Of a stretch of 64,000 nucleotides of DNA, positions 3,068 through 50,700 are shown in pieces. The first letter of the stretch is position 1, and each line of letters starts with the position of its first letter. This stretch comes from Trichosphaerium sp. ATCC 40318. Taxonomy: Eukaryota; Protista; Tubulinea. Location: contig JALMLS010000155.1 in NCBI GenBank assembly GCA_038496445.1, positions 158,064 to 222,063 of the forward strand. The letters run 5' to 3'. Made by a program: the position numbers and the translations under genes. The notes beneath the pieces were generated by a model. It was not told where the DNA came from, made no database searches, and saw nothing but the letters and a program-made list of their open reading frames with translations.

Positions 3068-5606
3068 ATGGGGATTTGCTCCTCATCTATGGATAGCGAT
3101 TCCAGGCTAGAGAGTAGAAAAATAGACAGAAAACTAGCAAGACAACGTAGACAGATGCAAGATGTGGTGACCTTACTACTTCTCGGTACATTTTAAAAAA
3201 AAAACGTGATTACCCCTTTTTTTGTGTTATAGTAACAACCTTCCTTTCATAATAGGTACTGGTGGTTCTGGTAAGAGTACTGTTGCAAAACAACTGCATT
3301 TAATCTTCGCTGGGGACTTTTCAAAAGATGAGCAAAATGATTTCTTGAGGATTATACATCACAACATTATATACCTTATGAGAATGCTTGTGAAAGAACT
3401 AGAGCGTGATAATGTAAATTTACCACATAACCTAACAGTACGTACCTTAAACATATTATTCCTCTGTCAACACATCAACCTCCGGCGTTCGCACGGTATC
3501 TATTTTTGTTCGAATCATTCACCTGTCACAAACCACACCCAACTCACAATTCATATTTTCGCGCTGTGGGTATTCAGGTGTTTATTTAAAGCGTCAATAC
3601 TCCTTTTGGACGGATTGAAAATGAACAAAAATACAAAAATAATAATATGTTGCTACAGGACGACCAAAAACTTATAAGCGAATTATCTCTGCGTAGCCCT
3701 TTAACAGCAGAAGTTGCTGACGCAATAGATCGCTTATGGAATACATTACAAGTTCAAGAAGTATTTTACGCAAAATCTTCTTTTGTGGGTCACAGGGAGG
3801 CGTGGGAATAGTACGTTATTAAGTTTATTCGAAAAAACCATTGAAGATTTTTCATTTTTCCAAATATCACCATAAATATCACGTGATTATATTTAATTGT
3901 ATTTTAACCTTTTACTAAGCTTGAGACCTCAATTGAAGACATATGCATGCAAGGATTACAAAGTAACAAAAGAAGATATATTACGAGCTAGGTACCGTTC
4001 AGTTTTTGTTTATTGAATAAGTGTGCTTTTTTGAACTACCAATCCAGATTTTTTGCTTCTGTCGTAATCTGACGTTGTTAGACATCGAACAACCGGTGTA
4101 AGAGAAACTAGTTTTTGTTTGGACGACCTGTTGTTTAATATAGTTGATGTTGGAGGGCAAAAAAGTGAAAGAAGGTAAATAGTTTATTTCATAATAGGAA
4201 GAAAGTTAAAGCACTTCCGAAAAGCCCATGTTCGCTATTTTTAACGTTATTACGATAGAAAATGGTTACATTGCTTTACTGATATCACGTGCTGTATATT
4301 CTGTGTAGGAACGAGCGACTGTATCCGCCCAAATGCGTAAAAAAAAACATTTAATGTTTACATTTGGCCAACCTTTTTTTTTTTGCTTGGCTGAGCATTC
4401 TATTTTAACATCTATCCTTGACACACTAAAGATGATTTAATGTGCGAAGAAATAGCTTCTGTCAATGCCATACATGATTCGCTTAAAGTATTCGGAGATG
4501 TAGTAAACGATAAACTGCTAATAGATAAGCCTTTAATAGTGTTTTATAACAAAGATGATATATTAAGGAAAAAAGTTCAAAAAGTCCCACTGACTGTCTG
4601 CTTTTCGGATTACAAAGGTTCGTAAAACATTGTGTTTTTATGTGTGCAAACATACATAGCTTCCCAATTTGATAGATGGGAGGTTGTTCCTTAAAAAAAA
4701 ACAACTGTCAAAAAAACTCGACCGCTACGCACCAAATACGCGTAGACGCGAAACTAGTTTTTCTGATTTTTTGATTTTCTGATACTCTAAACCGAGTGTT
4801 GTCGTTTTGTACTGCTTTTTTCTCCCCGATAAATTGCGGCTTTACGACGAGAAAAAAGTTCCTTTTTTGGTGCAAAGTTGACAAGTCGCATTGTCGCTCT
4901 ACGCCTGTTCGATTTTCAAAAAGTTTTTTTTCGTTTTTTGCGTTTTGTTTCGCTCAAAACTCTTTTCTGATACTCCCAATGCATATAATAACGCCATTAT
5001 ATTATTTACAGCGTATGCGTACACTTTTAGATGATTACATCCGCTACTAATTTTGCATTCCTCCTTTTCTTCTCAAAAAAAAACCGACGCTACGCCTATT
5101 TCGGAACTTGATTTACTTCGCCGTCATATAGCCTCGGTGTCATTTTTCTTTTCTCATAAAACTCCATTAAAAAATTACTACCCAGTTCCCTTTTGTGCAA
5201 TGCGAACATTACACGTGCAATTTTTTTGTTCAGAAAAAAGAGTCAATATGTCGCGCACAACCAAACTACTACCCTTTGCAAGTTCAATCTCACAGGAAAA
5301 TTTTAAAAGGCCGCAAAGTATTTTTGAATTTTTTTTATTAATTTCTCCAATATTATTCGTTGTAGCCATCCTCGCTCCTAGTAACTTACGTGTGACTATC
5401 TAGGACAACAAACATACGATGATGTGCTTTCATATATAAAAGCTAAATACGCGGAGAGGATCCGTTCCGCTGCCAGGAAGAAGAACATTTACGAGCATGC
5501 GACATGTGCGATAGATGCTGATAATGTGAAGCTAGTATTCGCAGTTGTGAGGAAGCAAGTATTGTCGGCGGTTCTTCAGGATGTTGGACTATCGTTCACT
5601 GTATAA
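3068..5606 (+). CDS. Heterotrimeric G-protein alpha subunit, 7 introns
   Basis: MGICSS acylation motif, LLLGTGGSGKST, RHRTTG, DVGGQKSERRKW, NKDD, TCAID. Confidence 0.95.
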
Positions 5607-5750
5607 AACAGTTTAAACAATAATGTACATTAAAAACCATCTAGAATGATTAGCAAGAGAGCTATGAATTGTAAAACGCATTTCCTTTTTAGTCTCCTTT
5701 AAACACAAGTCCATAATTAGGAGCAAAAGTGTCGGTTATTAGTCCATTCT

Positions 5751-7966
5751 TTACCTATAAATTGCAGACGTCTTAGGATACACGTAGAGTGTACGTTCCA
5801 CTACATTCCATGAGGTAGTGGAAAAATAGGAAAGAAATCTGCAACTGTTGCGGAGGATACCTTGAAAATAAAATGAGATCAATTTAAAATGGTGTATAGA
5901 TACTAAGAGCGTTGGGGGGTTTTGTGGGTATTCAAATTGAATTCCTCCGCGTGTGTGAACGGATGAGGGAACCACGTGGAATAAAAAAAGAAAAATAATT
6001 TTAAAGGGAACAGGCGGAACATGGCTATTCGCGTAGAGCAAGTGCGCCTTGCTTTACATGAACCTTTAACTACTCGCATTTTTAACATACCTTTTTCTTT
6101 ACAATTTTTCGTTGATACCTTCGGAGTAGCGTGATTTTCTGTAGTTGTTCCATGCATATCCCTTTTCGTCACTGAAGGCGACTACCGTCAAAAAACAACA
6201 ATCTTGCTGAGAGAGCTTAATTTGGTCTTCATAGCTTTTCATCTACGTGTCAGATAATACGTTTCTTTTCCTCCGTGAAACAAGTCACGCTGCATTTACA
6301 CGTGTAATAGTGAAATAGAACATGTAAATATTATGTTACGCAACGTTTGGGGCAAATCTATTCCCGGCAGACTAAAATCAGTGACATGCTCAATACAAAA
6401 AACTTCATTGCATGAATGCCTTATTGCACGCTATATGAATCTAAAGGATCATAATGCTATTTAGCTTTTGGACCGATGAAATAATGCCATTTGTACCGAA
6501 AAAGTGTACCCAATAACTGCATGAACGTTTCTCAACGTAAAACAATTTGTTTAACAGTCTGTGTAGTTGAGGTTGTGTTCGAAGTCTTTTCCTCTAATCT
6601 TAGGCACATCAATGACATACAGAACCTTTGCGTTCGTACAATAAAGGTGGTATTTGAGAACGATAACAGGGCGAAAAAAGCAGTTTGGTCGAAATAAGTA
6701 GACGTGTATGACAGAAAAAAGTCTGTATGTTATATTGTCTCTAGATGATTACAGAAGCTTCAAATAGAGTTTTGAAACACGTACTTCGTCATTATTTTCT
6801 GTAAAAGGAAGTTTTACCAACCTGCGTAGTATGCAGAAAAACTTCACAAGTTACACCTGCGTACGCATCTAGACGCGTGTAAACAATGTTTATTCCTTTT
6901 CGGTAAAGGATTGAAGAGAAAAAAGAATCTTTAATGGCATACGTCTGTACACTCTTTTTTTTGATGTTTTTCTCCGTTTACCTTACAAACCAGCTATAGA
7001 CTTCCCTGCTTTCTATTTTTGGAATAGAACTGTATTTGATGTTTTGAAATGTCGTTTCAAAGGGTAGCCAAAACCATATTAAAAGAAGGAGGCCATAAGC
7101 GCCGTCACACTGTGTTATATGTAACCGTAAGGTCTTTGAACAAATAGAGTTTTTAAAGTGATTTTCTTTTATTACATTTATAGTACAAGCTGTGGGTGTT
7201 TCTTGTTCTTCTTCTCTTTCCTCTCGTTTTTTTTGTTACAGGTGAGGAACATGAAGAAAAAAAAAATGAACGGTGGAAGTGGAAGCTTTTCTTTTTTTTG
7301 TTCTCTTCTTAGGTTTCGCAAATCGAAGTAATTCAATTCATAACATAGTCTACACGCATTCGTGAATCTCGACTAACAGTTTCTAAGTGAAATGATTAGC
7401 TTCTAGCTCGGTTTTTTTCCAACGAATAAAAAAAAACATTTTCTCCGTTACGTACTCGTTTGTCTGTAGTTCATCATGTGTGATGTAACACAACTAGATG
7501 TTGTGGGTATGCTAAGCCATGTATTGCGAATAAAGTCTCCGCCCATTCCTTCAGTGCCAAGTATGTTTTCAAGTGCAAGGGAGGCTTCTTCTTCCTCCTT
7601 AGATGCACCTGGGCGGAATCTCCATACGGCGTATAGTGGTCTGTTATCAGCTAGGCAGAGTGACATGTTGCTTTGTGGTTGTGAGTTGTGATTAATGGTT
7701 TCAAAAGCGGTTGAATTATTTTTTTATGAAATTTCGCTCCATTTTTGCACTTTTCCGCTTAAAACGGTTGTATTCGAAAGATACGCCCATAGGAATAATA
7801 TACACGTAAGAATATATAACATTTTCGGACCAGTGGCTGTTCCTGGAGACAGACTTCTATTTATTGCAACTTCTCACAAGAACTAGCGCAGTCGCACATA
7901 ATTGTTTTTAGAACGCTGATTGCGCCATAGTCAGGCGAAACGACATTGCTATCGTTTGTATCCATA
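5751..7966 (-). CDS. Probable multi-exon hypothetical gene or genes; structure unresolved
   Basis: Exon-like ORF 7448-7666 bounded by splice sites, hydrophobic MLYILTCILFLWA upstream, several minus-strand GT..AG introns; a full frame could not be assembled. Confidence 0.3.
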
Positions 7967-8390
7967 TTTGGATTCAAATCTGTTATTATGTTGTTAACCA
8001 ACCCATTTTTTTGAGATTAAACAATATACATACTATATAAACAACTCTTGGTTTACCCTACTGAAAACTCATTACATTTTTTTTGAGGTGAGTTCGTTTT
8101 CTGAATTCGTAAACAAAAAGTCCAAGTAAAAATGAGGCCACAATTAATTGTTAACAATGTCTATGTGTGGTTCATATACCACTCAGATTTTCTGTTTTCT
8201 TTATTTACGTTGCATACAAGCGATACGTAGTGCACTTTTTTACGGTCGTTATTTTTTTTTTTGTGGAGTGTATTAGGTTGTCTATGTACAAGGGGAGTTT
8301 TACAAGCGCTGCATTTTGGCAGCGATTCGAGTCAAAAAGCTCGTAGTTCTGAAAAAAGGTCGTTTTTGCGTCCGTGGCTTTCTCCGTTCT

Positions 8391-11300
8391 CTACGATTCT
8401 TCCGACTTTACAAAGCGTGCTAGCGTATTAAACGGTACAATGAGAAGGTCATATGTACCGTCTAAACGAACAATAGCTTCCGTTTGGTCAATACCCATAA
8501 GTCTAAAGGAGAATTTGTTTAGAAAAGGCGAATCCAATGAAAAAAAGAAAGAGTAGTTCGGTTAAAGCCAAAAAAAAAACACATACCTTCCAATAGCTCC
8601 TCTGTCGTTACCTGATACAACGACAACAAAACTCTTGTTTTTAGGTACAGTCTTATCGAGTATTGTTGTAGGTACTTGTACTTCCTCACCCTTTAACAAA
8701 GACAAGTAAGCGCTATGAACGACCGAGAAAAAGAGGGAAAAAAAAGATGTTCAAGTTGGTTCACTTTAGTACAAAAATAGAAGTCAAAAAAAACAGAAAA
8801 TAGGTCGCAGACCAAATGGCAGGGAAAAACGGGTACATGTACATACGTCAAAATTAACCAAACAAGTATCACCGTCTACTTGTGAGATCACGCCGGTTGA
8901 ATTTGCGAACTTTCCACCTGCAAAGTCGTTATCCGTTATCTTGACTTCTATATTCGGTAAAACCCACGAAGCATTGCCTAGAAAATGCGTTAGAAGAAAC
9001 AGGAAACAGAAGGGAAAAAAAAAAATCGGAGGGAAAGTTCCTCCCGTGAAACTTGTTGCAAATTTAGCACGTAGCTACGCTACTGGCGCTTGTAAATACG
9101 CAAGCATAAACTCACGACGGAGAAATAGCTTTTTCGATCTACTCGAGAAAAGGCGTAAAAACGTACTTGGTGCAGCAGGTTCTATTGTGTATGCGCCTGG
9201 AGTGCTTGGTGGCATCATGCCAGGAGTGCCGGGTGTGGCAGGAACACCTTAAGAAATAAATTATTAATTTCCAATAACGTCCTTAATTCGTACCTGGTGT
9301 GCCAGGTGTCTGTGGCATCATCATACCAGGCGTGCCAGGTGTGCTAGGTATGCCCATAGGTGTTGTTGGGACCATACTGTGCATGCCGGGTGTACTTGGC
9401 ATTCCAGGAGTTTGTGGCGCTCCGAAAGGAGTTGGAGGTGCGCCAGGCGTGCTTGGAGGCATCATACCAGGAGTACCAGGTGTTCGCGGTGGTAGAGAAA
9501 CCATGCCGGGTGTACCAGGTGTTTGAGGTATACCTGGCGTAGAAGGGATACCAACAGGTGTGGTTGGATTGTATGACATATCTACACCAACACCAGGCGT
9601 AGCCGGTTCGCGTATAGTACCTACATGTTACATTAATCAAAGTTGAGAAAAAATTTTCGAAAAACTAAGAAAGCAAAAAAAAAAGAACAAGTATTCAAGT
9701 CTCCTGTTCAAACTGATTTTGAACCCCCGCAGGTTCCTTTCCATTGTGTAAGCGCGCGTGTAATGAGTGCCACAGAGATTTTAAATGATTTAGAGAGAAA
9801 AAGAGAACTGGACCCGTATTTTGTTTGGCCCGCGGTTTTTTTTTGATTCACCAAATTGTACTAACCAGTCTTTTTCAACCACTTTTTGCCATTTTGTTCA
9901 ATTTCAGCCATTTCTTTCATCAAAAACTTTAATTTTTTTCGCGAGTGGTGAAATTCTTCACCCTCCAAATCTCTGCTTAGAAACAAGCGTAGGTCCTCGC
10001 GCCACGTGGAAATCTGCTCGAACGTTGTACCAACGTCGTACCAGCTCGCGATTGACAGTTTGTATGGATTTTTGCATTTACGCGTATAACTCACTCCAAA
10101 AACGTTCCTTTTTCGTTTACGTGAGGACATGTTGTTGTCGTTACAAGGTAGGCCAACTTTTGCTAACAAGTACCTTTTTTGAAAGCGTTATCACTTCTGA
10201 CTTAAAATACTTGTTGTAAGTTCACACTTGTAAATTTCTCCGAGTTACGCTCAACTGACCACTTAGGGCTTCTTTTTCTTACACTTCGTAACGTTTTTAC
10301 AAAAAAAAAAACTAACCACAAAAAAAAAAAATTGGTGAAATTGAGACTTGGCCACTAACAGAAAACACAAAGTTTTGGTTCACGCGTGTTGTTACCAAAC
10401 TCACTACTACTGCGGGGGGGAATAACAAAAATACCGACTAAGATAATAAATTTGCGTACCTGGTGTCGTAGGAGGATACAAATAAGGATCTCCAGGCGTA
10501 GCAGGGGGTTGCTTTGTGTACAGTTAGACAAAACAAAAGAAAAAAAGTTTGCTTGGCATGTTGAATTCGTAAAATCAAACAATACGAACGAAAAGCAAAA
10601 AAGAAATGTAGCTTGGGCGTTTTGCAGTAGGAGTTAAATCACTCATATGTGCACTGCTCAGAGAAAAAAAAAAACTCAAGAAAGTGAGGTGTACGCACAT
10701 CATTATCACCTCTAGACAGTGGATATTGATTGCTTCCGTATGCGTTTGATCCAGGTGTTTCTGGTGACCGATCATCATTCCAAGACTTGGAGTGTCGTTA
10801 GTAAAATAGGAAGGGTGCTTCTCGAAAAAGCCGAATTATTGCTGAAGGAAGAAAATTGTCGTACTCTGTCAGACATTGGGTTAGGTGTAGGCGTCTCTGA
10901 GCGCAAAGGCGTCGCGGTAGGATTCCACACATCCCTACTTGGCGTAGATGGCGTGTGATGAACCATAGGCGTAGAAGGTCGCATTGGAGTAGCAGGAACG
11001 TTACGTCGGACTGGTGACACATCTCTATTATCTCTTCCGCTAGAACTACTTTTGCTAGCGCTTCCAGAACCGTTAATTTCTGTAACAAACCCAATTTTGA
11101 CGGGAACAGTTTTGCAATTCGCGTGTAATTCGACTCTGGCTGTGGTATCATTACAGTTCTTTACAATACCTATGTATCCGCGCCAACGACCCTTACTGTA
11201 CACGTATTAGTGACAAAACGTTCCCACATTTTAGTTCGTTATGCGTACTTTATCTTTACAGTTTGATGACGAAGTGGATGATCTCTAAGCGTCCTGGCGC

Positions 11301-14131
11301 CCTTTGGAATACCTCTTGGACCTCCACCGCCACCACGTGAGTTATTATTATTATCAAGGGCAGAAAATCGATTCTTTCTTTTGCCTTTTTGAGAAGTTGT
11401 CAGTACATTAATTACCTAAACTAGCACTTGGTGTACCTCCTAGCAGAGCAAGGTCCCTAGACTTTGCAGCAAAAATTCCAGAATTTTTATTTACTTCTCG
11501 GGAAAACAGGAAAACGTGTTGTCGGAATATATGTTTTATCGTAGCAAGGATCTATAGTTGATTGGTTAATTTTCAATGCTAAAGTATAGATAAAAGCGGA
11601 ATAAAATAATTATCCATATGTGCCAACGTACGCCTCCAAATTGCCCTCGTTGGACTGATACGCGATCCCCTTTGTTGATAGAGTTATTTCCGCTGTCAAG
11701 CGTAGTTGAACGCCAGTTCCAATTCTTTTTAACGACTTGCTTTAATTTAACGTCTTTAAGCTGTCCACCTGTATCAAGCACTTGGAAACCATCTCTATCA
11801 ACGCGAACAATGACACCGACGTTTTGTCTAAGTACAAAGAGTAAATTAAGTGATTCGACATCACATGTTCACTGCAAAATCCGTACCCAGAGAATGTGAT
11901 CATATCATGAAGTTCATACTCTCCTAGCTTAATTCTACCAGCAGATACTTCCTCAGATCTTCTCAGATCACCGACTAACGCCTTAAATGTCTTTTTCGTT
12001 ATATCAGTAAGAACTGTAGCCACCTCGCCCTCAAGTGCTACAATATGTCCTGTACTATCCTTATTAGGTCCGTCTAACACTTTAACATGGTTTCCGCGAT
12101 CAAAATGTTTAGCCAATTGAGCAATAGGCAATTCCAATGGGTCCTGGTAAAACCGTTTAGAAGTTGAGAAAGAAAGAGAAGGTAATGACAAAGGTCGTTA
12201 TTTACCGTGAGCTCCTTGTGTTGTGGCATAATAACAACAAGACCAGCAGTCTTATCAACTGACATGACCTTACCAACCAAATTCTTTAATTCACCTTCAA
12301 TAACTCTAACTTTATCGTCCTTCTGGAAGTTGTGTTTTCGTGTTGATGTATTCCTTAGTGCTTCAATATCTGCACTTATTTCGTTTACATCATCATCTAC
12401 CTTTTGGCTTTGAAATTTCTCAAGTTCTTTGAGTGTAGGTGTCACATCTTGCCACATGATACTCTTAATTGGGAACTCTTTGTAAAGAAATCCATTACTG
12501 TATAATTCATCGTTCCATTGATAAAACCGTTTGCCAGTTTCCTTTTGCGATATATATCTACCAGTGTCTCCCATACCATTATCCTGAATTCGAAAGTGTT
12601 AGCAAACAAAAAAAACACAGAAAATACAAGGTAGTTTTCAACAGCAACTAATCACATACACTAAGGTCGTTCTTGCTAAAGAATTTCGCAGCAGGCCGTC
12701 TAGCTTTTGTCTTTCGCTTGCGCTTACGGACTACGCGAGCTGTTTTAATTGCACCATCAACAATGTCTTGTTGTGCCTCTTCATACTGCTCGTCGTCCTT
12801 AAAAATCATAAGTTAGGAACAAAGCCTTGTTAAAGTTTTTTCTTGTGGCGCTGACACTTACCGCCATGTCCTCGTTGTGTTGCTTCCTAGTTGATCGATT
12901 GTAATCAATCCTTGGAATTATACGAATCATAGCTTTGGCAGTTGTATCTTGGAATTGCTCGACTTGTCCAAGATCGCCTTTGTACAAACCTCTCTTTAGC
13001 CTTACCCATTGTCCCTATTTTTTCGTTCAACACCAGAAATACAAATGTACAAATTAAATTAAAAAATCAAACAGCATACGTGTTTTAGCTTTGGTATACT
13101 CTGTGGAATCTTTAGCACTTCGGGCATTTGGTCTAGGCCAACTAGCTTAGGTTTACTCCAAGTTGGAGCCATTGTCAATCCTTCAAGTGCCTACACAAGG
13201 TGAGCAATAGAAACAAATTACTAAAAACCGTACAGCTGATACGTGACTCTCCCTGTGGGCTTCAATATAAATATATCCTTTAATGTGATCCAAGCAAAAA
13301 GCTGAAATAATAGGCAAGGTTATGCCTAATTGTTTCTTGTTCAGGTACTTTTGCATAATACCAACAACTAAAGCGCGCTCTTCACCAACCTTAATAATTA
13401 ATTGAGTATCTCCAAAAGGTCAAGAGAGTAAAAAATATGCGAACAAAGATAATAAATAAATAGCAATCAAACTTGAGTATAATTGTTTGGTTTATCTTTA
13501 CCTTCATTTTGAGATGCCATAATTTTGGATCACGTAGCGTTGGTAATAGGGACTCTTGAGCGACGTTTGGTATTTCACCCTCAGGCATATCATATTCCTC
13601 TTCTTTATCATAGATGCTATAACGATTGGCAATACGCTCTTCGTCTATCTCACCATCGAAATACGTTTCGCGGCGCACTCTGTTTCTTCTCTTATCTAAA
13701 AAATGCATTTAACGATGTAATAGCGCAGATATGACGCCAATTACCTTGCTCAGCGATTGCCTGTAGATAATTGTCATCTGCTACTTCTTTTTCATATTGG
13801 CCTAAATTAATTCGTTAACTCTGCGCACTTGCTTTTCTGACGTTCAAAATAGCGAATAAGACCGAACTTTTCGCGTTTGACCGGTTTTTTGCAAAAAAAC
13901 TGCATTTCAATCATACGCACCTGGTTTGGCCTCCTCGAAGTCATCTGCTTCCACAGCAGCGTCGTCAAAAAAATCAGCTGCTGTTTTCCTTCGCTTGGAG
14001 TCTCGTTCGTAGTCATCCTCCTCATCGTTTGAATCGAACTCTTCGTCCTCATCCTCTGGGTCTGGTACAAAGTTTCCATCATAACCATATTCGAGGTTTG
14101 CAGCATTCAACAGGCGCTGTGTATTAGACAT
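8391..14131 (-). CDS. SPT5: Transcription elongation factor SPT5, about 20 introns
   Basis: Acidic N-terminus, LLPTLRDPKLW, NGN domain (KGYIYIEA), KOW motifs (YKGDLGQV, GNHVKVLDG, KGRWRGYIGIVK..ARVELH), TPG-repeat CTR, C-terminal KOW. Confidence 0.96.
9195..9606 (-). repeat. SPT5 C-terminal repeat region (PxTPG repeats)
   Basis: Many TPG/TP units in ORF 9283-9579 and the flanking exon. Confidence 0.85.
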
Positions 14132-26361: not shown

Positions 26362-27836
26362 ATGCTATCAAGGGTTCAACGGTACATTTTTGTAGGCAAT
26401 AGAATAAAATAGCCTTAAAAATAACATTAGGTTTACTCAACAGTCGCACACACGCGGAAGAGTGCTATCACAGAGGCGACAGCAACATAAAGTTAAAGCA
26501 GTTAAAAACTATTCAACTTCGCCAATACCACCCTTTGGAGATCCAAAGAGCCCTGTAGTAATCACTTGCGCTATTACAGGAGATGTGCCTTCAACAGACC
26601 GTATACCAGTCCCAGTAACTCCAGAACAGCAGGTATGCGCTACATACGACACTATTCGTTATTGTGTTTCGTTCACGAACGGAAATTAACTTTAGTGTAG
26701 GTAGCCTCTATTCTTGAAGCACATGAGGCTGGCGCCTCTGTTGTGCACTTGCACGTACGCGATGAGGTACGTGGTCCTTTTTGACACTTTCTTTGGTCAA
26801 AAATAAAACCGAACAGGGCGATTATTGACACTCTGTTTTTAGAATGCCAAATGCACGTTCAATCCAGATTTATATAAAAAAGTAATGGATGGTGTCAGAG
26901 AAAAAGCTCCAGAAATGATTCTAGAGTTCTCAACAGGTCAGACTTGTTTTTTTTATGTTGCAACAAAACATAAATTTTCAAGATAGGTAACTATGCTCCA
27001 ACCGTTCAAGATCGCGCTTTGTGTCTACAACACAAACCTGATATGGCATCGTTATGCCCCGGCTCAGTGAACTTCAAGGCAACGAGACCAGGTAAAGATA
27101 TCTTCAAGTACGACATACAACATAAGATTTATGAAATTGCTAAAGAGTATAATGTACAGACAGTTCCTAAACACCCACGAAGAGATTGATTATCTAGCAA
27201 AGACAATGATGGATAATAATATTAAACCAGATGTTGCAATATTCGATGTCAGGTTCGAGTTTTCTTTTGAGGCAGCTTGACGTGTCAACATTTGTCATTT
27301 TATAAGTTCAGTGAATCTCAAACGTCACAATTAATACTTTGACACCGCTGACCTCCTACTAGTATGTTGTATCATACCAATGACCTCATACGACAGGGTA
27401 AACTTAAAACGCCTGTAAGACTTATGTTCGTTATGGGAGGACATATGGGACTCGAAGCAAGGAGACCATTATTAGATTTTCTTGTTAAGGAAAGTACTGA
27501 TTTATTGGGTAAAGAAAACTTTACATGGCAAACAGTGGGAGTCGGTTGGAATCATGATTCTATTGCTAAATGGACTCTTGATCTAGGAGGTATGTGTATA
27601 CAACTGTATCACTGGATTAAAGCACAACCTTGCATTGTTTCTGCAATATTGTAGTCATGCCTTTTTTTTTTTTAGGTCATTTACGCACAGGGTTTGAAGA
27701 TTCCCTCATGATTCGTAGAGGTGTATTTGCAAAATCAAACGCGGATTTGGTTAGGCATATGGCTAGCCTATGCAAAGCTATTGATAGACCAGTTGCAACT
27801 CCACAACAAGCGCGTGAAATTATTGGTCTAAACTAG
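26362..27836 (+). CDS. Beta-keto acid cleavage enzyme (BKACE/DUF849, Kce-like) with a predicted mitochondrial presequence
   Basis: VITCAITG, PVTPEQ, EAGASVVHLHVRD, PDMASLCPGSVNF, GGHLRTGFED, RPVATPQQAREI; Arg-rich N-terminus without acidic residues. Confidence 0.9.
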
Positions 27837-29882: not shown

Positions 29883-30669
29883 TTAGCTTGTTTCACTGAT
29901 TGATGTTGTACGAAGTAGCAGTTGTAGTCTAAACGGATAATTGAGTGATCTAGAAGCTATAGGGATAATGACAGCATCATCATCGCCTACAGACTCATCT
30001 TCCTGGCTGTCCTCCATTGTAAAGTCCATTTTATCTACATCAACACTTTCAACCGTTTCAACCGATGTCCACGTTTCAGAAAGTGTATTTGGAGACTTGG
30101 TGTGACACACAATTCTCCATCGAACATCTTAAAGCAAGTTAGTATTTGTGTTGTCTGACATAAGCAATACCATCAAGGGAGAACTGTTGCAAAGCAGGTG
30201 GTTTTGTGTCGAGATTTCGCAAAAATGGAGACAGATTTGGAGCATAAGATTTTGACATTTCATAACAATTAGAGATTTCAAGTATTAGTTCCTCTGTACG
30301 TAATAAGATAGTTGTTTGCTAGTTTTAGTACCTAAAGTATCTGAGGTGTTGATGTCGTAAACTTGAAGCCTGATAGAGTCTATTGAGTCGCTTGATGAAG
30401 ATAAACTGATTTCTTCGAGCGTTGCACGAATGTAATCGCAAAGTTGGTCAGATGTACTCCTAAAGTATGATGCAACGCCAATTACACTCCTATTGAACGT
30501 TGTAGGCGGGTATCTTACATGTTAAGTTAAAATAAGATTATGTTAATCCCCAAACGGTGGATACAGTCCGCGAACATACAAATAATGATGTATCACGCAT
30601 TCTACAAACAGTTACATCACCCATTACATTTACTGTACCTAAATTCCGATACAACACTCCAGTTGACAT
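29883..30669 (-). CDS. REV7: HORMA-domain protein, REV7/MAD2L2-like
   Basis: Spliced LECVIHHYLYVRGL|YPPTTF...LCDYIRATL; C-terminal IIPIASRSLNYPFRLQL resembles the REV7 C-terminus. Confidence 0.75.
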
Positions 30670-39577: not shown

Positions 39578-39801
39578 TCAGAAACTTTGTTGTTTTAGCG
39601 TGTCGCTTAGGCCAATCAAACAAATATCAACTTCCTCTGTTGATGCTTGTATCTTGTACACTTAATATTATCGTGCCATTAATGCTTTTGTACGCTGGTT
39701 ACTCGTAGAATTATAATTTACGTTTGAACAATTATTTTGGCTCCTGAAAAGGTTGCGTGTGAAAATTTAGTCAACGCCTAATAATCTTGCTACCTCACAA
39801 G

Positions 39802-41551
39802 ATGCAAGCTTGGTTTTCGTTGTTAGTATTGCTTGTAGGTATTGTGGGTGTACAAGCTTTACCATTTTGTCCTATGAAAGGCTGTGACCCAACCGTTTCT
39901 TATTTGTCGCTTGCAATTGTACCATCTGCACCTTTAGAATTAAAGTGGCAGTTGAATAGCCTCAATGGTACCAGTCTTCGTATCAAAACCGGTGGTGGTT
40001 GCTCTACTGCAGGTAGTAACGCGTATTGTACTGTGCAGAACCTCAATGGTATGATTACATGTGTTGTTACTTGTTTTCGTTATTAAACACCTATTAGGTT
40101 TATTGGCTGTCGCACCAAATGGATCAGTATTGTGGCAATCTCCCATATTGAGCGACGCGTAAAAAGTTAAAGTTCACGTGCTATTTTGTAACGTTAACTA
40201 GTGAAGCGATACCTCTTGTTCTGGGATTTGGTGGCACCGCAGTTATTTCTCACGATGCTGAAAGGTAGTATCTTTTGTACATGTCCTCACTCTTACTTGT
40301 GATTCATTAGTATTGCACTATTAGTGGCAAATGGATCTCCAGGTTGGGCACTATCTTCTACACCAACACTATTTTCTCCAGCTTTGAACAAGAATTTGTT
40401 TTTCGCACGTGACAATATGTTTAGCACAGTAAGCAAGTGTATTTACAGAGCATTAGATCCTTGGTGACAAGAGAAACGGTGGAGTGGTGGCTATCGATCC
40501 AAATGGATTGTCCTATGCCTCTCTTGATTTTACTGTACCTGGTGGGACATTCGGGATTGTTAGTGAGTTACAAAGGTTTTTTTTGTAGTGTCAGTTGCTT
40601 CATTCTAACGTTGAAGGTACACCTCCTGTGATTGGTAACAGAAACTACGTTCTCACTCAATTTCATGCGGACGAGGGGTAAGTTTGTTTCCTTGGTTTAT
40701 CAGACTTATTAAAAGATAAGGAAAGAACAAAAAAATATGTTTTCTGCGTATGCAATTGACCTTCATGTCGCCCTTTCCGGTCGTTTAAATATATCGTGGG
40801 TATATAGTATGGATGGCAATGTTACAAATAGTCAGTATGTTTGTTAATGCATTAAGAAGGGTGATAGATGAGTCTAATTTGTTGTAGGGCGATGTCGGTA
40901 AATGATCCAAAAAGTGGCAGTAATTCTTTGCTTATACCTTACCTCGACACCGATGATGTGTTGCAAATTGTTTGCATTCTTGATAAAGGCGATTCATATG
41001 CTTATCATTGGCAAACATCGTTAAATACCTATAATACAACGTACAGTTCTTTACTGTTAGATACATTTTGGAGATCTTATTTTATTGTAGTGCATTCTTG
41101 GCATCTGACGGTAACGAAATGGTTGTTGCTAGTGTGGCGAATACCTCAATTTTACATTTCGTGGATCTGATTACTGGGTTTATACTCAGAAGTGTGGACA
41201 TGAAGAGATTATTAAACGTGACAAACGACGTAGCGTTACAATATTTTAACACTGCCATACCTAACAAACTCATAGGTATTGATTACAGCGCCTGCTTTGC
41301 TCGTAGGACAAGGGAATAGCAAATATTGTATAGTTCCTGTATTCATTTGTGAAGCTGATACTAGTGTTGTTGTTGCAATAGATATGAATAGCATTTCATT
41401 AGCATGGAGCGTAAAAGTCGGTGTTGGAAAAGAAAATACTGTTGTATCAAATGTAATCGTACTGAACGGAGTTGATGGCCCTTTAGTTGTAGTACCAACA
41501 GCAGCGGGTTTAAAAGCGTTTGGTGAATTGAATAAAAGTGATACGTTTTAA
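39802..41551 (+). CDS. Secreted protein with PQQ/BamB-like beta-propeller repeats
   Basis: Signal peptide MQAWFSLLVLLVGIVGVQA; repeats LAVAPNGSVLWQ, VVAIDPNG, YAID..ISW, VVAID..LAW. Confidence 0.6.
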
Positions 41552-42259
41552 GGCCTATTCTTGTTTTATTCGCACATTTATCACGTGCAAAGGTGTTTCG
41601 AGCTTACGCTCATAGTTGTCTTATCTATCTATAGCTTTTTCTTGTGCCCCATGACTTGTGAGCTATATCTTCTTTGTCTCTTTGCAAAGCAATTTACAAT
41701 GAGGTGCAAAGTTGTTCAATTGTTTGTATTTCTTTGTAGACGCAGATTCGAAGCTAGTATGCTCCATGGGTGCTTATAAGACTCAGTTGTATGTAAATCA
41801 TGTCATAGTATAACCTTAATACGGGTGGTTGTAGGTAGGCAACTACGAAGTAGTGATGTATGGTATTAATTACATTGACTTGTCATGTATATTTCCTTTT
41901 TGATACGGAATACTGTGCTATAGTATACTACCTACATAATTTAGGACGGCATAGAACTAAGTTGCGACGTAGTTCGTTGTCGTTATTTGTCGATGACACT
42001 TTACCCAAATTAATCCCGGCGTCGGGTATTTTTATCCCGTAGCTTCTTAATCCAGCTAACGACAAAAATTCGATACTTACGTAAGCTTAGGGCACACTAT
42101 GTAAGGATGGTGTTATGTACACAGTATAATACGCTGAATTTAGATGACAGACGTTTGTCGTTGCATTAATATGTTCCTGAAAAAAGTAACTTTTTTGTTC
42201 CGTTTGCGGAGTTTCTCAGACAGTCTAGTTTCTCCATATTTAAAAAACTGCATTCCTTC

Positions 42260-43150
42260 ATGTCCAGTCCCGACATCAACAACGCCTCACCGAGAGAAAC
42301 AACAATCCTAATGGACAGTAAAAAGAAAGAAGTATCAGATAAAACATTTAGGACACTGTTCTACTGGAACCTAGCGATGGCTATTTTTCACTTTATTCAG
42401 GCTGTAGCGATATTTGTGCTTGCTGGAGTAAATTCGACTTTCAGAGACTTTAAGCTACCTATTCGACGCCTAGAACTTGTCGTACGCCAGCCAGGCGGCG
42501 TTGGGAACGAGACAGGAGAATTTATCGACTCACAGCTAACTGATGTTGGTAACATTCGTGTAGCTCCCCTCACAGGCATATTTTCTTTGCTCTCGGCTAT
42601 ATTCCACGTTTTGGTGATTCTTCCTTACTTTAACAAATTGTACAAAAACGGTATCAGAGGCGGTTATAACTACTTTCGGTGGATTGAATACTCGCTATCC
42701 TCATCAGTTATGATTTTCCTAATTGCGCTCTTTTTCGGCATCTATGATATTGGCACTTTGGTCCTCATCGTAGCAGCAAACGCTACGTGCATGCTATGTG
42801 GTCTTTTAATGGAACAACTAAATCGGTATACTAAACACGTCAATTGGACACCTTTCCTTGTTGGTTGCTTCATTGAGATATTCCCCTTTGTGGCTATCTT
42901 TATAAGCTTCTTCTCTTCGGGTGGTAGACAAGCTCCAAGTTTTGTAGTTGTAATTTTGTTCGTTGAGATTATTTTCTTTTCTCTATTCGCATTCAACATG
43001 GTATTGCAATACGCAAAATTTTGGAAATGGCGCGACTATGTATTCGGCGAGATTGCCTACCAAGTGCTATCACTTGTTGCAAAAACTCTTCTTGCTTGGA
43101 TTGTGTTCGGAGGTCTAAATCAACCAAACGAATTTGCACAAGCATCATAG
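42260..43150 (+). CDS. Heliorhodopsin, intronless, 296 aa
   Basis: 7-TM ORF with WNLAMAIFHFIQ (TM1 His/Gln), SAIFH (TM2 His), RWIEYSLSSSVM (TM3 counter-ion Glu), GLLME, GEIAYQVLSLVAKTLLAW (retinal-binding Lys); basic N-terminus. Confidence 0.95.
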   Translation: MSSPDINNASPRETTILMDSKKKEVSDKTFRTLFYWNLAMAIFHFIQAVAIFVLAGVNSTFRDFKLPIRRLELVVRQPGGVGNETGEFIDSQLTDVGNIRVAPLTGIFSLLSAIFHVLVILPYFNKLYKNGIRGGYNYFRWIEYSLSSSVMIFLIALFFGIYDIGTLVLIVAANATCMLCGLLMEQLNRYTKHVNWTPFLVGCFIEIFPFVAIFISFFSSGGRQAPSFVVVILFVEIIFFSLFAFNMVLQYAKFWKWRDYVFGEIAYQVLSLVAKTLLAWIVFGGLNQPNEFAQAS

Positions 43151-43259
43151 AAATAAACATCTTTTTTTTGTTTGTTTTTGTCTTTAATTAATTTACAAGT
43201 TGTGCTCACCTTTTTTTAATCGCTTTGTCGTATAAAGTGAGCTGCCACTATATTAGTTT

Positions 43260-43807
43260 CTAGGCTATTCTTCGTCTTGCTCTCGGGATGTCAACAGTTT
43301 TGTTTTCTTAAAGTATTCTGCTACTTTCTTCTTGTTAAGATAAACAGTGGCACCAGCTCCGCAAAACACTTTGTTCTCTACCTACTAGATTTGTTGGTAC
43401 GTTTTCATTTTGCGGTCATGTACCTTGACAGGAATGGCCCATTCGGGTACAACAAAATTTTTGAGTTCTTCTTTGGTTGCCATCGCCAATTGCGCGTACA
43501 GAGTATATTCCGGCGTGATTGCGTTAAATTCTAAGCGAATACAGTCTGTTGTAACTTCGAGGTGTGTTATTTTCGAATTCGGGTCTGGATTGTGGATGAC
43601 ATTATCTTGTACGTTGTTTGACACGTTTTTACCAAGCAAACTCGGCAAAATCTTGTTGAAGCGTTCATTTTGCGCCAGCAATTGTGCCACGCCGTCATGA
43701 GTATTACTAGATTGATTAGACGCGTAGTGACGCTTTGTACGAGACAGGTAAGGAACTTTTGCAATGCAACGTTTATTGGCCCAACGTACGCCCAGTACGG
43801 CACGCAT
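43260..43807 (-). CDS. Hypothetical protein with a mitochondrial-presequence-like N-terminus, 1 intron
   Basis: MRAVLGVRWANKR..RTKRHYAS; long exon, then a GTACAT..TAG intron, then VENKVF..RRRIA*. Confidence 0.55.
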
Positions 43808-43918
43808 GGCCGCGATGTAGCACAAGAAAAAACCTTTTAGCAGTTGTTTAAGTTGTAGTTGGCTGGAAATCAGCAAGCTCAGTTTAAATGTGAGTCTAGG
43901 CAAGCGATTGGCGTTAAT

Positions 43919-44308
43919 CTATAATCTTGCAATCCATCTTCGTTGTAATATGAAATTGACACATGACTTGTTAGAGAAAGTGTACAAAGGTTTGCTTAGA
44001 TCTTCTTTTGAGAGTTTAAAGCCCTCTTCATCCAATACAGAGAGGTTTCGCAAATTATACGCAGACAATGCCTCTTTGACGGTAGTATTAGCAGATAAAG
44101 ATGCTCTGTTCCTCTGTTGTACTAAATTAAAGGTTTTTGCCGTGAATGGTTTTACTGTAACGAAAACAGTAATGTTTCCACTCCCTCGCTCTTTTTGCGG
44201 GTCCCCTGTACCAAACTTTTTTATCTTTGTTTCTGTGGCGTATTCCCAACCGCTCTTTACAAGTTGTGTGGCTACACCACCCGCTAGAGAGGCTAAAACG
44301 ACTGCCAT
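43919..44308 (-). CDS. Intronless hypothetical protein, 129 aa
   Basis: Single ORF from ATG (MAVVLASLAGG) filling an intergenic gap, protein-like composition. Confidence 0.5.
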   Translation of the reverse strand: MAVVLASLAGGVATQLVKSGWEYATETKIKKFGTGDPQKERGSGNITVFVTVKPFTAKTFNLVQQRNRASLSANTTVKEALSAYNLRNLSVLDEEGFKLSKEDLSKPLYTFSNKSCVNFILQRRWIARL

Positions 44309-44461
44309 CACTACAGAGTTTGTACGAATTAAGTTAAACGCGAATTTAGTTGGCAAGTAGTCTCTCAAAAAATCTTGATCCACAAAGGTATTTAATATGC
44401 GACAGCACTAAGCAAAAAGGGTGTTCGTGTAATTTTTAAAGTTGATACAAGTATTTCTCAT

Positions 44462-45455
44462 TTAAATGAGCTTTTTCTTTTTGAAGTACATTTTTAGGTA
44501 GCGTAATTGCAAGTAACCCGCAGTTACAACTAGGATAACTTGCGCCAATGAAAACCAGAATACACGTCCGCTTGTACTCTCTGTTGTGGATCTGAAGCGC
44601 ATCTCTCTTCTCTGAAGAGAAGTGTTAAAAGTGACATGTCATTTTGAAAAAAAAAACCCAAACAATAGTTCGCTTTTATACTATCATCTACTGCGTACCT
44701 TTGAGTATCTTTGGTCAGCCCTAATATTGTCTATTTTTGTCTGAAGGTTTAGAAGGCGGCTATGAATTTCTGTACACACCATTAGTGATGCCGGTTACAA
44801 AAGGTTTTTTTGCATTTTTTTTTGTTCATCAGGAAATGACGTTTTGACACGTACGATCAATATGCTTCTTTTCAGCTGCATTTTCTTGGTCGTTCATTCC
44901 CCATTCTTCGTCTCCCATACCACCCAAGTGGAAGTCCATGTAAAATTTCTGTGAGAGTCAAGAAGAATGACAGTTGAAAAGAATGCGTTTAGCATATTAA
45001 ATAAAACGTTGATTGGCGGATACAAATTTACTGAGGCCTCTCCAACTGGCACTGGTCGTTTGAAAACAAATACTGTGCTCTCCCGCGTCATGACTAGTGA
45101 TAGTGAAGCTACCTTTCTTTGGGTAGTTTCTACGATGTGTTTCTGCGCCCGTTGGGCCATTAACTGTGACCTAAACAGAAAGTTTGTGAATAATAACAAC
45201 TGTTTTATCTATTAGTACCATAATTTCGAACTGCGCGTTATTAATATCCTGTGATCCGGCTTGCATTGACTCAACGCGCCATTGAGCGCCTACGAGGAAG
45301 TCCCTTGGTATCTATTGAAAGGTTACGTCTGCTCTCTTTTTTGACGCGTAGCTAACCTCCTGAACAAAACACTTTCTTTGTCCTTCAGTCATGTGTATGT
45401 ACCAGCAAAATGCGCCAGTGAGGTGCAAAAGTAGCAAGCAACCAACGAGCTTCAT
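44462..45455 (-). CDS. p24/emp24/gp25L cargo receptor, alpha subfamily (TMED9-like)
   Basis: Signal peptide, EGQRKCFVQE, GEHSICF (GOLD), REMRFRSTTESTSGRVFWFSLAQ, C-terminal YFKKKKLI*. Confidence 0.92.
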
Positions 45456-45882
45456 CTTGGTGGTGTTCAACGTGGCAGCTTTGTGAATAAGAGTGGCTGG
45501 TTTTTTTGCTGACTTGACTTTTCCAAACTTATAGTCAATCTATTCACTAAACCTGGACTTACTCGTTGTCTAATTTATTTTCGTTCCATAGAACATACTT
45601 AAGCCTTAGTCTCGTACGTATTCACATTTACGCTCCAGTATTGTTAAACCTTGTACTCCGTATTTTGAATACCTAGTAAGAGTTGTTTGCGAGTCGTCAC
45701 ACGTGCGTGGACTGTTTGTGCAACCAACATTGTATCACGGTTTTAGCTTCTGTCGCTGTCTTAGCTACACATCTACGAGCTTTTTTACTTGATTTGGTCG
45801 AAAGTGAAGCGTCAGTATTGTTGCGTTGAAAAAAAAACTGTATTACAGAAAGGAACTAAGCAACTTTATTAACAGGACCAAC

Positions 45883-47365
45883 CTAATCTTCGCCATTGCG
45901 TGCTGAACGACGTGACCTACGCTCTCCTCGTTGTCTTCTTGGTTCTAGTGTAGGTCTAGAGCCTCCCTGTCTGGCAGCTCGCCTATCGGCTATCTCTTTT
46001 TTCTTTCGATCGATTTCTGCTTGCATTCGTTTAGATTCCTCGTCGGATGAAGATTCTTCGCTGTCACTTTCTTCACTTTTTTCGGCTTCTCTCTCAGCTA
46101 CTCTTTTATCGTAGGCTTTTCTTCTTTCCAATCGTTGTTTCTCTAGATCTTTAAAGCTCCGACCTCTTTCTTTCTCGACCTTGTCACGTGCTACTTTCAT
46201 CTTGTATGCTCTTTTTACAGAATTGGCTTCTCTACCGTCTGTTGGAATTTTCTCGGTGATCTTAGGAACGTCGCTTAGTTCACCACTCTCAACCTTAGAT
46301 TTCACCTTGGCCTGCAAAGGACGAATTTCATCCCAAACATTGTACGTAAAGAAATCACCTACCCACCCCTGATACTCATCTTTTACTGTCCACGTATGGG
46401 ATCCTCCTCTCCAAAGGTCTCCGTTTAGTACCACCGGGGCATCGTATTCTGGATACACGCTTCTTTTTGCAAGGTAGAGTTTGCCACCTGAAATGCGTAT
46501 CATTTTACACTCGTCCTTGTCAGTGAATCGAAACAGTTTCCTTCTCAATCCAGGGACGCCATCGATGTACAGAATAAAAGGAAATCTTTTATACGAGAAG
46601 CCAGTAGGTTGCCAGCGAAGGAGCATTTTTTTATCGGTCCAATCTTTACCCTCCTGCTTTCTGTACAAATCTATGCTGTCTTCAGTAAGATCTGTGCAAA
46701 ATATAATCATATTGGCTGAATGCCAGCATTCTTGTCTTTTGAGTGACTCCGCTTTTTCCTCGTCTACGAAGTTTTCCAGTGGGTATTCAACAGGTCTCCT
46801 TGCAACGATTCTTCTTTTTGTGCTACGACCACTACTCTGTTGGCTTGAGCGAGAAGCTGACGTTTTGGTTTTTGACTCCTTAGGGCGCTTCCCTGGTACC
46901 AACACAAGCTTCCCTCCCTTGATTACTACTGAATCGCCCTTGTACGGTACTTTTAGTGATTTCCCGTTTACACTAACAACACTGTTGTCTTTTTTAATGA
47001 AATTCATGAGCGTTTGGCTCGGAGTAATGGACCTAGATGATGTTCCAGCGCCACATTTCACCTTAATGTCGTATGTGGCCTTATCTTTGTTTGTTATGCT
47101 ACCGGCACTCATTGCTCTTATTGTAGGTAAATATGAGTTGTCTTTTAAGTTCACTTGGAATCGCATGAAACTTGTTCCCAATTCACTTAAGGATCTGTTT
47201 TTCGCAGTAACCTTGCAAGTTATTTGAAAGCCTAGGAACGCAAGTTTTACGATAAACCCACTTGTTCAAAACAGTCCAATAAATACAGCTCTTTATTGGC
47301 ACGAAAGTGTAAAGGAGTTGTTGTAAGTTTGTTTTTACGTCTCCAACATTCTCCGGTTGCGCCAT
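45883..47365 (-). CDS. Hypothetical protein of about 478 aa with one 46-nt intron (47212-47257) and a charged tail
   Basis: ORFs 47183-47365 and 45883-47181 join in frame through TGG|GTTTAT...TGCAAG|GTT; the N-terminus is weakly F-box-like. Confidence 0.6.
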
Positions 47366-47771
47366 GACAGCGCAATCAGTTACAAACAGACTTCCTTTTA
47401 ATTTTCGGACAGTGCACCTAGATGATTGACCATTTACAAACCAACTAGAATTGAATCATGTTTACGCCGTGTCTATGACAATTCTGACGCTGTACGACAT
47501 TGACACATTTTCTTGAACAGGAACTTACAATTTTTGTTTTCTTTTTTGCTTAGGATTTGCTGTTTTTATTTAGTTAAAAGTTGAAAGATGCGTGAGCCAT
47601 TCTAAATCCTGGATCACTATTGCTATAGGCCCTAGCACTCAAATACCAAACGTCAATTGAAGATTTTCATAAAAAGCGTTGAAAAAAATCACGGAAAAAA
47701 GGCAGAACACAAAAGAGTCAATGAAAACCAGTATTTTATTCTTGTAGCTTCAAATCATTATTGTAAACAAC

Positions 47772-50700
47772 ATGGCGGAACAAAACACGCCTAGTGGTGA
47801 TACACCAAAGGTAATAAAGGCTTAAGAGAAACTCATAGCTCCTAGTTTTGCGTATCATTCCCTGTTTGCTACGTTACAACGTCCAAACACCGTGGAAGCT
47901 CTATGCGATAAATTTTAGCCACTTTACAGCGATCAGTGCCTAACTATACTTTAGTCTACGAAAAAACGCGATGCTCTTCGCGAAATAGAGATACAAGTAC
48001 AAAAGAAATGGGAAGAACACAAAGTGTTTGAAGATGACGCACCTGCAGATCCAAACAGCAAACCAAAGTACATGGCTACGTTTCCTGTACGTATCTTTAA
48101 ACACCAGTGACCCCCAAATTCAAAATACTTTCTTACACTTGTAAAAGTACCCATACATGAACGGAAGACTTCACCTTGGCCACACTTTCACCCTAGCAAA
48201 GGCAGAGTTCTCCGTTGGCTACCAGAGACTTCAAGGCAAAAACACCTTGTTTCCATTCTCATTTCACTGTACCGGCATGCCAATCAAGGTGCGATGGCAA
48301 TAAGAATTTTACAGTGTTACCTTTGTGTAACTGTGGGCATTTTTCTTTTTCGTCTTGTGCCAAACTTACAGAAATACGCGTAGACATCCGCAGATAAGCT
48401 TGCCGTTGAAATTTCCAAGTACGGTAACCCTCCACAGTTCCCTATTGAAGAGGACGAGCCTGAAAAGAAACCAAAGCAAGACGTTGTGGTTGATCACACA
48501 AAGTTCAAATCCAAGAAGGCTAAATCCGCCGCAAAATCTGGTAAAAAGAGCGCCAAACAATGGGAAATTCTTCAAATGTCTGGTATCCCTGACGAAGAAA
48601 TCCCAAAGTTCCAAGATGCAGCTTATTGGCTTCAATACTTCCCACCACTTGCTAAGGTACGAGAAGAGTATTTTTTTTATTTATGCATTTATTTTTTGGT
48701 TAACACCTGTTTTCTAGAGCGATCTTAAAGATCTCGGTGTCAAAGTAGATTGGCGTAGATCATTTATCACTACTGAAGTAAATCCGTTTTATGATGCTTT
48801 TGTACGTTGGCAGTTTATAACACTCAAAAAACTTGGAAAAGTTCAATTTGGTAAAAGGTACACCTTCGCTGATTACTGCAGTCTATTTTTTCGCTTACAT
48901 TTAAAACTTTCAGGTATACGATATACTCTCCAAAAGATGGACAACCTTGCATGGACCACGATCGCGCAGAAGGCGAAGGTGTGCTCCCTCAGGACTACAC
49001 TTTGATCAAGCAAGAACTTCTCGAACCGTACCCAGAAAAGCTTGCATCTCTCAAAGATACAGGCAAAAAAGTGTACTTGGTTCCTGCCACTCTAAGACCA
49101 AACACAATGTGCGTGTACCACCTCCACAATACGTTTCAATTTACTTGGGTTTTAGGTATGGTCAAACAAATTGCTTTATTCTCCCAGAGGGCGAATATGG
49201 TGCCTTCGAAATCAATGACACCGATATTTTCGTTTGCACAGAACGTGCTGCACGCAGTATCCACTTGCAATTTATATTTGCTGTTTTCAATTTTCTGCAT
49301 TTTCCTTAACATAAAACAGACATGTCATTCCAAGGACTCTCCCCAGAGTTTGGTGTTGTCAAATGCCTTGCAAAATTTAAAGGCTTGGATATTATTGGCG
49401 CTGCCTTGAAGGCTCCGCTTGCTACATACGACAAAATATACGTCCTACCTATGGAGACTATTTCAACTACAAAGGTATTCTTTGGTTTTAAAACTTATAA
49501 AACCAACAAATCTTTTGACGTATACTTTGTTCAAAATCTCACGGCTTAAAATAGGGTACAGGTGTAGTGACATCTGTTCCTAGTGATGCACCTGACGATT
49601 ACATGTGCCTCAAAGATCTCAAAACTAACGAGAAAATGAGAACAAAATATTTCACCACATCAGGCCTCAAACCTGAAATGGTTGACGTACGTTTGGACTG
49701 CTACGATTTTGTACAAGCACCATTAAATTCTAACCTCTTTTTTAACAGCCATTTGAAGTTGTTAAAATCATTAATGTGCCTGGATACGGCGAAGACTCTG
49801 CTGCTTCTCTATGTGAGAAGAAAAAGATCTCTTCCCACAAAGATAAAACTGCTCTTGAAGAGCTCAAAAAGTTGGTGTACCTTGATGGTTTCAACCACGG
49901 TGTCATGTTGGTTGGCGACTACAAAGGACAGTATCCTCAGATAGTTTTTTTTGAATATTTTTGTAGCATTCTATGTATTTGCTTTAACTGTAAAAAGAGT
50001 TGTCAAAGAGTGCATATCAAAGATCAAACAAGATCTTATCGATGCTGGACAAGCCTTGCCTTACAGCGAGCCTAACGGAAGAGTTGTATCTCGATCTGGT
50101 GATGTTTGTGTTGTCTGTTTGTGTGATCAGTGGTATGTTACATACGGTGAACAAAAATGGAAGGAATCAGCACTCAAGTGCCTCGAGGCCATGAACACTT
50201 ACGGGTACGCGAATGAGAAATAAGAATGCGCTTGGTGCTTGTTTATTTATGCCTTCAATAGAAACGAAACAAGAAATATGTTCGCCAAAACTTTTGATTG
50301 GATGAACCAGTGGGCTTGTTCACGTTCTTATGGTCTAGGAACTAAGGTCCCTTGGGTGCGTGCAGTAGTTACAAAAAATACCAGCAATTTTGATGACCAC
50401 AACTATTTGAGCGCTTATCACAATGAGGTAGGATGAGAAATACTTGATTGAGAGTCTATCAGATTCTACCATTTACATGGCATTTTACACTATTGCTCAC
50501 TTGCTACTTGGTACGTTTTCGTAGAAGTTATTTGTCAACCAAATACTTGGCACAAGCTTACTGTATCTGTGTAGGAAAAGACAATATTGCTGGTGCAGGT
50601 GTTGGTCCTCTAGGTATTAAGGCTGAGCAGCTTACACCTGAGGTACTTTAAATTTAAAAGTCATAAGATGAAGAAATTTACCCGCGTAGGTGTTTGATTA

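Follow-up and report, generated by a model that had tools for sequence, protein, structure and literature searches.

Do five introns that begin with GTATCC, all within one 64,000-nucleotide stretch of the Trichosphaerium sp. ATCC 40318 genome, belong to the minor (U12-type) class, and does their number mean that such introns have multiplied in this amoeba? The stretch (contig JALMLS010000155.1, positions 158,064 to 222,063 of the forward strand) is referred to as the window, and positions are counted from its first nucleotide. The introns lie in genes for a G-protein alpha subunit (G-alpha), a HORMA/REV7-like protein, a p24/TMED protein, and, twice, cytosolic leucyl-tRNA synthetase (LeuRS). 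The canonical U12-type GT-AG intron of animals, plants, and early fungi has an RTATCCTT donor and a TTCCTTRAC branch site. A preliminary description of the window proposed that the five represent an expanded minor set, amounting to 2 to 3% of introns, with a donor read by a divergent U11 or U6atac small nuclear RNA (snRNA). The results presented here suggest instead that the five are quite probably genuine minor-spliceosome GT-AG introns in four old housekeeping genes, and that they form a local cluster rather than an expansion.

Reading the sequence confirmed all five introns, with the coordinates and strands that had been proposed for them. Each starts with GTATCC, ends with AG, and has a YYTTRAC-like motif (ACTTAAC in the REV7-like gene) that places the putative branch A 8 to 10 nt from the AG, as previously described. 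The G-alpha intron (4321..4431, plus strand; 111 nt, phase 1) has the donor GTATCCGC and the branch motif TCCTTGAC at 4415-4422, which fits the strict pattern with its branch A 10 nt before the 3' end. The p24 intron (44949..45023, minus strand; 75 nt, phase 0) has the same donor, GTATCCGC, and the motif TTCTTGAC at 44957-44964, which places its branch A 9 nt before the 3' end. The LeuRS gene spans 47772-52677 on the plus strand. Its intron a (49257..49319; 63 nt, phase 1) has the donor GTATCCAC and the motif TTCCTTAAC at 49302-49310, and is present in the genome-wide set of strict matches as C98:207320-207382. Intron b (49931..49997; 67 nt, phase 2), a probable U12-type intron, has the donor GTATCCTC and a wobble variant of the branch motif, GCTTTAAC, at 49981-49988; in both LeuRS introns the branch A is 10 nt before the 3' end. 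The intron of the REV7-like gene (30514..30564, minus strand; 51 nt, phase 2), also a probable member of the class, has the donor GTATCCAC and the motif AACTTAAC at 30521-30528, which fits DCTTRAC and has its branch A 8 nt before the 3' end. Thus, the branch motif is an exact CCTTRAC in two introns, TCTTGAC or ACTTAAC in two, and CTTTAAC in one, and the phases read from translation of the flanks are, in order of position, 1, 2, 0, 1, and 2.

Homology searches were run exon by exon, with single exons rather than joined spliced models as queries. The exons flanking the G-alpha intron correspond to positions 199-218 and 220-280 of Pfam PF00503, and the split codon is position 219. Searches of the PDB aligned the flanks of LeuRS intron a to residues 313-344 and 346-394 of human LARS1, and those of intron b to residues 437-496 and 504-565, with residue 1 of the latter query projecting to 498; the split codon contributes one residue at each of these junctions. 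A Pfam search with the LeuRS exon pieces gave no match. The upstream exon of the p24 gene corresponds to positions 41-87 of EMP24_GP25L in Pfam and to residues 92-128 of TMED9; the downstream exon, too short when searched alone, gave no match, and the intron between them contains an in-frame TAA. Therefore, four of the introns lie in genes whose homology was demonstrated with search tools, with gap-free continuity across the introns of G-alpha and LeuRS and with homology of the upstream exon only for p24. The REV7-like exons, of which the upstream one is only 37 nt, had no Pfam, PDB, or word-search match. HORMA clusters in the ESM Atlas (0.86, 187 shared features) provide a lead for the downstream exon, and the junction was set by eye and by the in-frame stop within the intron.

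The meaning of a GTATCC donor depends on what ordinary introns look like in this genome. The published draft of 70.9 Mb has 27,369 transcripts, about 8 introns per gene, and a mean intron length of 75 nt (PMC10521059), figures that imply approximately 210,000 to 240,000 introns at a density near 3 per kb. We ran an unsupervised and rather crude gene finder, developed for this work and using no branch signals, on the window, a 200-kb sample, and three small loci. It predicted 863 introns in 273 kb, 217 of them in the window, and thus the earlier rough count of about 200 window introns was fair in view of both this number and the published density. The gene finder predicted the p24 intron and both LeuRS introns without branch information; it missed or mis-set the other two, placing the G-alpha donor wrongly at 4337. 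The major donor consensus among predicted introns is GTACGT, an unusual one, with G at -1 in 57%. None of the five introns has G at -1 (P = 0.015), and GTATCC is a poor major-class donor in this genome. Ordinary introns have a YTRAY branch motif 10 to 14 nt from the 3' end, and therefore a short branch distance does not by itself discriminate the minor class. Two further features of the major introns were C at +4 in 58% of the 863 predictions and 26 GC-AG introns in the window and the sample loci L004-L023.

The association between donor and branch motif sets the GTATCC introns apart. Among 862 predicted introns, a CCTTRAC, DCTTRAC, or CTTTRAC motif at 8 to 13 nt was found in 4 of the 6 with a GTATCC donor and in 5 of the remaining 856 (odds ratio, 340; P = 8e-8), and GTATCC donors are thus clearly enriched in this motif over other introns. 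The same combination, a GTATCC donor with a branch motif and AG downstream of it, was then counted over 70.3 Mb, with the pattern run backwards as the control. Exact CCTTRAC gave 149 matches (control, 12) at gaps of 20-50 and 178 (control, 27) at gaps of 51-120; the counts were 392 (control, 198) for DCTTRAC and 221 (control, 100) for CTTTRAC. The totals of 940 matches and 337 controls leave an excess of 603 +/- 36. Chance meetings of the two signals in ordinary introns are expected fewer than 10 times, given GTATCC at about 0.2% of donors, branch motifs at 0.6%, and 220,000 introns in the genome. The five introns are the only like-for-like matches to the pattern in the window.

Three snRNAs of the minor spliceosome are encoded in the genome. 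U11 was found at 66 bits and U6atac at 52 bits, both above the curated cut-offs, and the 5' end of U11 is the canonical AAAAGGG. U12 was found at full length, at 39 bits; this is below the curated cut-off of 53, since a 51-nt intron interrupts the gene. Its branch box is canonical (GUAAGGAA), and the box GUAAGGAAAA is intact and identical to the Rfam consensus, with no change of the kind known from Physarum. The intron that splits the U12 gene (L001:1501-1694; G000 C49, minus strand) is of the major type (GTACGT...CTAG) and lies between part of helix I (AGCCTTAAACTAA) and the branch-pairing box (TGAGTAAGGAAAA).

It is conceivable that all five introns are ordinary U2-type introns whose likeness to U12 signals is coincidental, and the failure to detect U4atac in the genome, even at E <= 10, could be taken in that sense. 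For Acanthamoeba and Physarum, too, the minor snRNAs found earlier do not include U4atac (Lopez et al. 2008, PMC2396436). Chance is expected to supply 0.31 pattern matches in the window against the five found, all of which are on introns that the reading frames demand. This excess, the odds ratio given above, and the presence of three minor snRNA genes make coincidence in all five extremely improbable. The proposal that the five are of the minor type is thus supported by the snRNA genes as well as by the enrichment of branch motifs behind GTATCC donors, and we consider it very likely, as far as sequence can tell, that the window introns are U12-type. By rough likelihood ratios each of the five is of the minor type at more than approximately 85 to 90%, and the two with an exact CCTTRAC far higher. 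For annotation of the Trichosphaerium genome this provides a rule: GTATCC plus YYTTRAC 8 to 13 nt upstream of AG.

If the five are minor introns, they make up 5 of about 217 in the window, a proportion that, together with a donor that is uninformative at +8 genome-wide and a U6atac box that differs from AAGGA, could suggest a minor set expanded to 2 to 3% of introns and read by a U11 or U6atac that diverged within this lineage. All five fit the pattern that was counted genome-wide, and therefore the comparison with the genome is like-for-like. Minor-type introns so defined make up 603 of about 222,000, or 0.27%. At most 263 more come from a looser class, ATATCY (575 matches versus 312 in the control), and duplicated loci and double-counted acceptors reduce the 603 by about a tenth. 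With the AT class and branch variants outside the scan, the total is perhaps 0.4 to 0.6% of introns, similar to that in humans. The window density extended to the whole genome would require about 5,490 matches, compared with the 940 raw matches found. In a random 200-kb sample there were no pattern matches where about 15.6 would be expected at the window density (P = 1.6e-7). The proposed 2 to 3% therefore does not describe the genome.

The snRNAs do not favor divergent readers either, because U11 and the branch box of U12 are canonical. U6atac, at the sole locus with an exact core in the genome, has GCCGA where human AAGGA pairs with the donor. This is the CC variant, [GU]CCGA for AAGGA, that has been reported from Acanthamoeba, Physarum, cnidarians, Trichoplax, moss, and oomycetes (Lopez, Rosenblad and Samuelsson 2008, PMC2396436), a list that includes lineages with canonical donors. 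The single U6atac of Trichosphaerium is in this respect as in Acanthamoeba and Physarum, with nothing specific to the genome. Nor is the GCCGA box complementary to the donors, and it does not explain them. A compensatory change in U6atac was considered and rejected: GCCGA would pair with UCGGC, but position +6 of the donors is C, and at +7 the G that could pair with the box is depleted (3 to 7%). A second, canonical U6atac was also rejected, as the one look-alike core, at C16:33341, lacks the downstream CAAGG. The snRNA search suggested in the preliminary description thus recovered U11, U12, and U6atac, but neither U4atac nor any change that would compensate for the donors. Considering density and snRNAs together, an expansion with diverged readers is very improbable.

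Strict U12-like matches lie beside two of the minor snRNA genes. One (L001:2558-2643, plus strand) is in a GNAT/NAA10-like gene, identified by Pfam from its upstream exon, approximately 0.9 kb from the U12 gene; the other (L002:1801-1895, minus strand) is a candidate approximately 0.2 kb from the U6atac gene, where the read-through frame is also open. The expectation per locus is about 0.014 such matches (post hoc P, about 6e-4), and the proximity may be due to chance.

The preliminary description called the donors relaxed and noted that TT is missing at +7/+8 from all five, an observation that proved correct. To place it in context, positions +7 and +8 were tallied by hand, and hence approximately, from the listed strict matches (92 distinct rows with gaps of 20-50 and 97 rows with gaps of 51-120). 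T occupied +7 in 62% of the first set (A, 26%; C, 9%; G, 3%) and 53% of the second, and +8 in 38% (A, 27%; C, 25%; G, 10%) and 34%, respectively. TT is the commonest pair genome-wide, at 32% for the shorter gaps and 26% for the longer, and its absence from five of five (probability, 0.15 to 0.23) is unremarkable. At +8, T is at the background of ordinary introns (34 to 38% versus 36%), and this position is therefore uninformative. The donor code of Trichosphaerium is thus shorter than the textbook RTATCCTT, with little information past +7, and this is a property of the genome as a whole rather than of the window. The branch motif, too, is often a one-mismatch or wobble version genome-wide, with exact CCTTRAC in about 45% of the counted class. 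All of the window donors (at 4321, 30564, 45023, 49257, and 49931) have C at +8, and two of them have GTATCCGCC in common. C occupies +8 in 25 to 27% of the genome-wide matches, giving a post hoc P of about 0.001 for five of five; this uniformity is probably a coincidence.

Several observations weigh against the interpretation that the window holds a local cluster of five genuine minor introns. The branch motifs are weak in three of the five (REV7-like, p24, and LeuRS b). The identity of the REV7-like gene is only a lead. U4atac went undetected, as noted above. An ordinary intron at 1222-1290 (minus strand), one of the 5 of 856 and the one near 1230 about which the preliminary description had rightly cautioned, carries TTCTTGAC, which is taken as chance. 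Finally, the window was expected to contain 0.55 real matches in addition to the chance ones, and a plain Poisson calculation gives P = 2.6e-4 for five in one window, with about 0.3 such windows expected per genome.

The weak motifs raise the possibility that at least one of the three introns concerned is removed by the major spliceosome and is a minor-like or hybrid intron, with signals that are coincident or are relics of conversion. Two of the six predicted GTATCC introns have no minor branch motif, which leaves room for GTATCC introns of a major or hybrid type; YTRAY is equally far from the 3' end in ordinary introns; and about half of the genome-wide DCTTRAC and CTTTRAC matches are noise. 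Nevertheless, these weak branch classes occur in only 3 of the 856 non-GTATCC introns, which gives a rough likelihood ratio of about 20 to 55 per intron. None of the three introns has G at -1, and the two classes together show a genome-wide excess of 315. A major-spliced intron among the three is therefore unlikely.

The Poisson rarity means that some heterogeneity or gene-level clustering must be assumed. It is softened by the fact that the window was singled out from a scan of all approximately 1,100 windows. In addition, by a rough by-eye tally, pairs of strict matches no more than 5 kb apart are about 2.5-fold commoner than expected (about 10 pairs versus 4). Examples are C7:74563/74740, C34:288898/290966, C43:149025/149733, and C69:132551/133204. 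Two minor introns in one gene, as in LeuRS, may be common, and a concentration of minor introns in old conserved genes, in which the window is rich, would further raise the local expectation.

We infer that the five introns are removed by the minor spliceosome. In the mechanism that the signals suggest, U11 would pair through its AAAAGGG end with the UCC core of the GTATCC donor, while the U12 branch box GUAAGGAA would pair with YYTTRAC and bulge the branch A 8 to 10 nt before the 3' end, after which the CC-variant U6atac would take the place of U11. The high local count would reflect clustering in a region densely packed with ancient genes.

Some other candidates in the window and elsewhere were discarded. 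A possible sixth intron, ATATCCTTCC...TTTCTTAAC...AG at 52198-52312 (minus strand), is attributed to chance, as it is antisense within the LeuRS gene and no compatible frame is open in its flanks. A match at 1980-2148 (minus strand; ATATCCTTTG) has no coding support, and one at L003 802-921 is noise, the local gene using a GTACGT intron at 811-857. A looser scan for the motif plus its flanks yielded hundreds of uninformative rows, and its coding score for the flanks was too weak for use. A remaining candidate for a minor-like intron, of the AT-AG kind, is the sequence ATATCT...TTCCTAAAC...AG at 27098-27182 (plus strand). Removing it extends the open frame beyond the stop of the predicted gene at 26362-27189, and the unspliced reading is open to that stop too.

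Trichosphaerium resembles systems with canonical U12 introns in its GTATCC core, in a branch motif of the CCTTRAC type some 10 nt before the 3' end, in the intact pairing boxes of U11 and U12, in a minor-intron share of a few tenths of one percent, and in the placement of these introns in old housekeeping genes. The five introns also lean away from phase 0 (1 of 5), as canonical U12 introns do. It differs in that +8 is uninformative, T occupies +7 in only 53 to 62%, exact CCTTRAC accounts for about 45%, and the introns are very short (51 to 111 nt). The human and mouse minor-intron tables of PMC6717393 include MAPK8, SNRPE, VPS35, and IPO5; LARS, MAD2L2, TMED, GNAI/GNAS/GNAQ, and NAA10 are absent from them.

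Among Amoebozoa, minor introns have been counted at 265 in Protostelium, 90 in Pelomyxa, and about 12 in Acanthamoeba, and among fungi their density is 0.27% in Rhizophagus and 0.55% in Basidiobolus (Larue and Roy 2023, PMC10639083). The estimate for Trichosphaerium, at least about 530 to 600, is above those of the three amoebae, and its density is near that of the two fungi. Like other Amoebozoa and the minor-intron-rich fungi, Trichosphaerium thus appears to have retained the minor spliceosome with a modest intron complement. Trichosphaerium is not in the text of PMC10639083, and the literature searched shows no link between it and U12 or minor introns. Most sequenced amoebae have few or no minor introns, and the present results add a poorly studied amoebozoan branch to the lineages that keep a working-looking minor spliceosome and a complement on the human scale. 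A more speculative reading, which we regard as rather doubtful, is that Trichosphaerium has the largest amoebozoan minor complement outside Physarum (about 600 to 1,300 introns), with a shortened donor code and a tolerant branch code, and that much of it arose by lineage-specific gain instead of retention. The LeuRS, REV7, p24, G-alpha, and NAA10-like genes are not minor-intron genes in human or mouse, and genes with two such introns are seemingly overrepresented. Under this reading, Trichosphaerium would represent a second, milder amoebozoan episode of minor-intron gain.

In Physarum polycephalum, the minor introns number more than 20,000, their branch motif is a new one, TTTGA, and the U12 box has changed to compensate (Larue, Elias and Roy; bioRxiv 10.1101/2020.10.12.336362). 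Trichosphaerium, also an amoebozoan, likewise has numerous minor introns and relaxed signals, but its approximately 600 to 1,300 minor introns retain the classical branch motif and its U12 box is unchanged. An expansion with coevolved snRNAs, tempting as it seemed, is thus the wrong account. The introns of Trichosphaerium are classical minor introns and not the Physarum system. A complement of human scale in this branch bears on estimates of how dense minor introns were in ancestral Amoebozoa and on the setting in which the Physarum expansion began.

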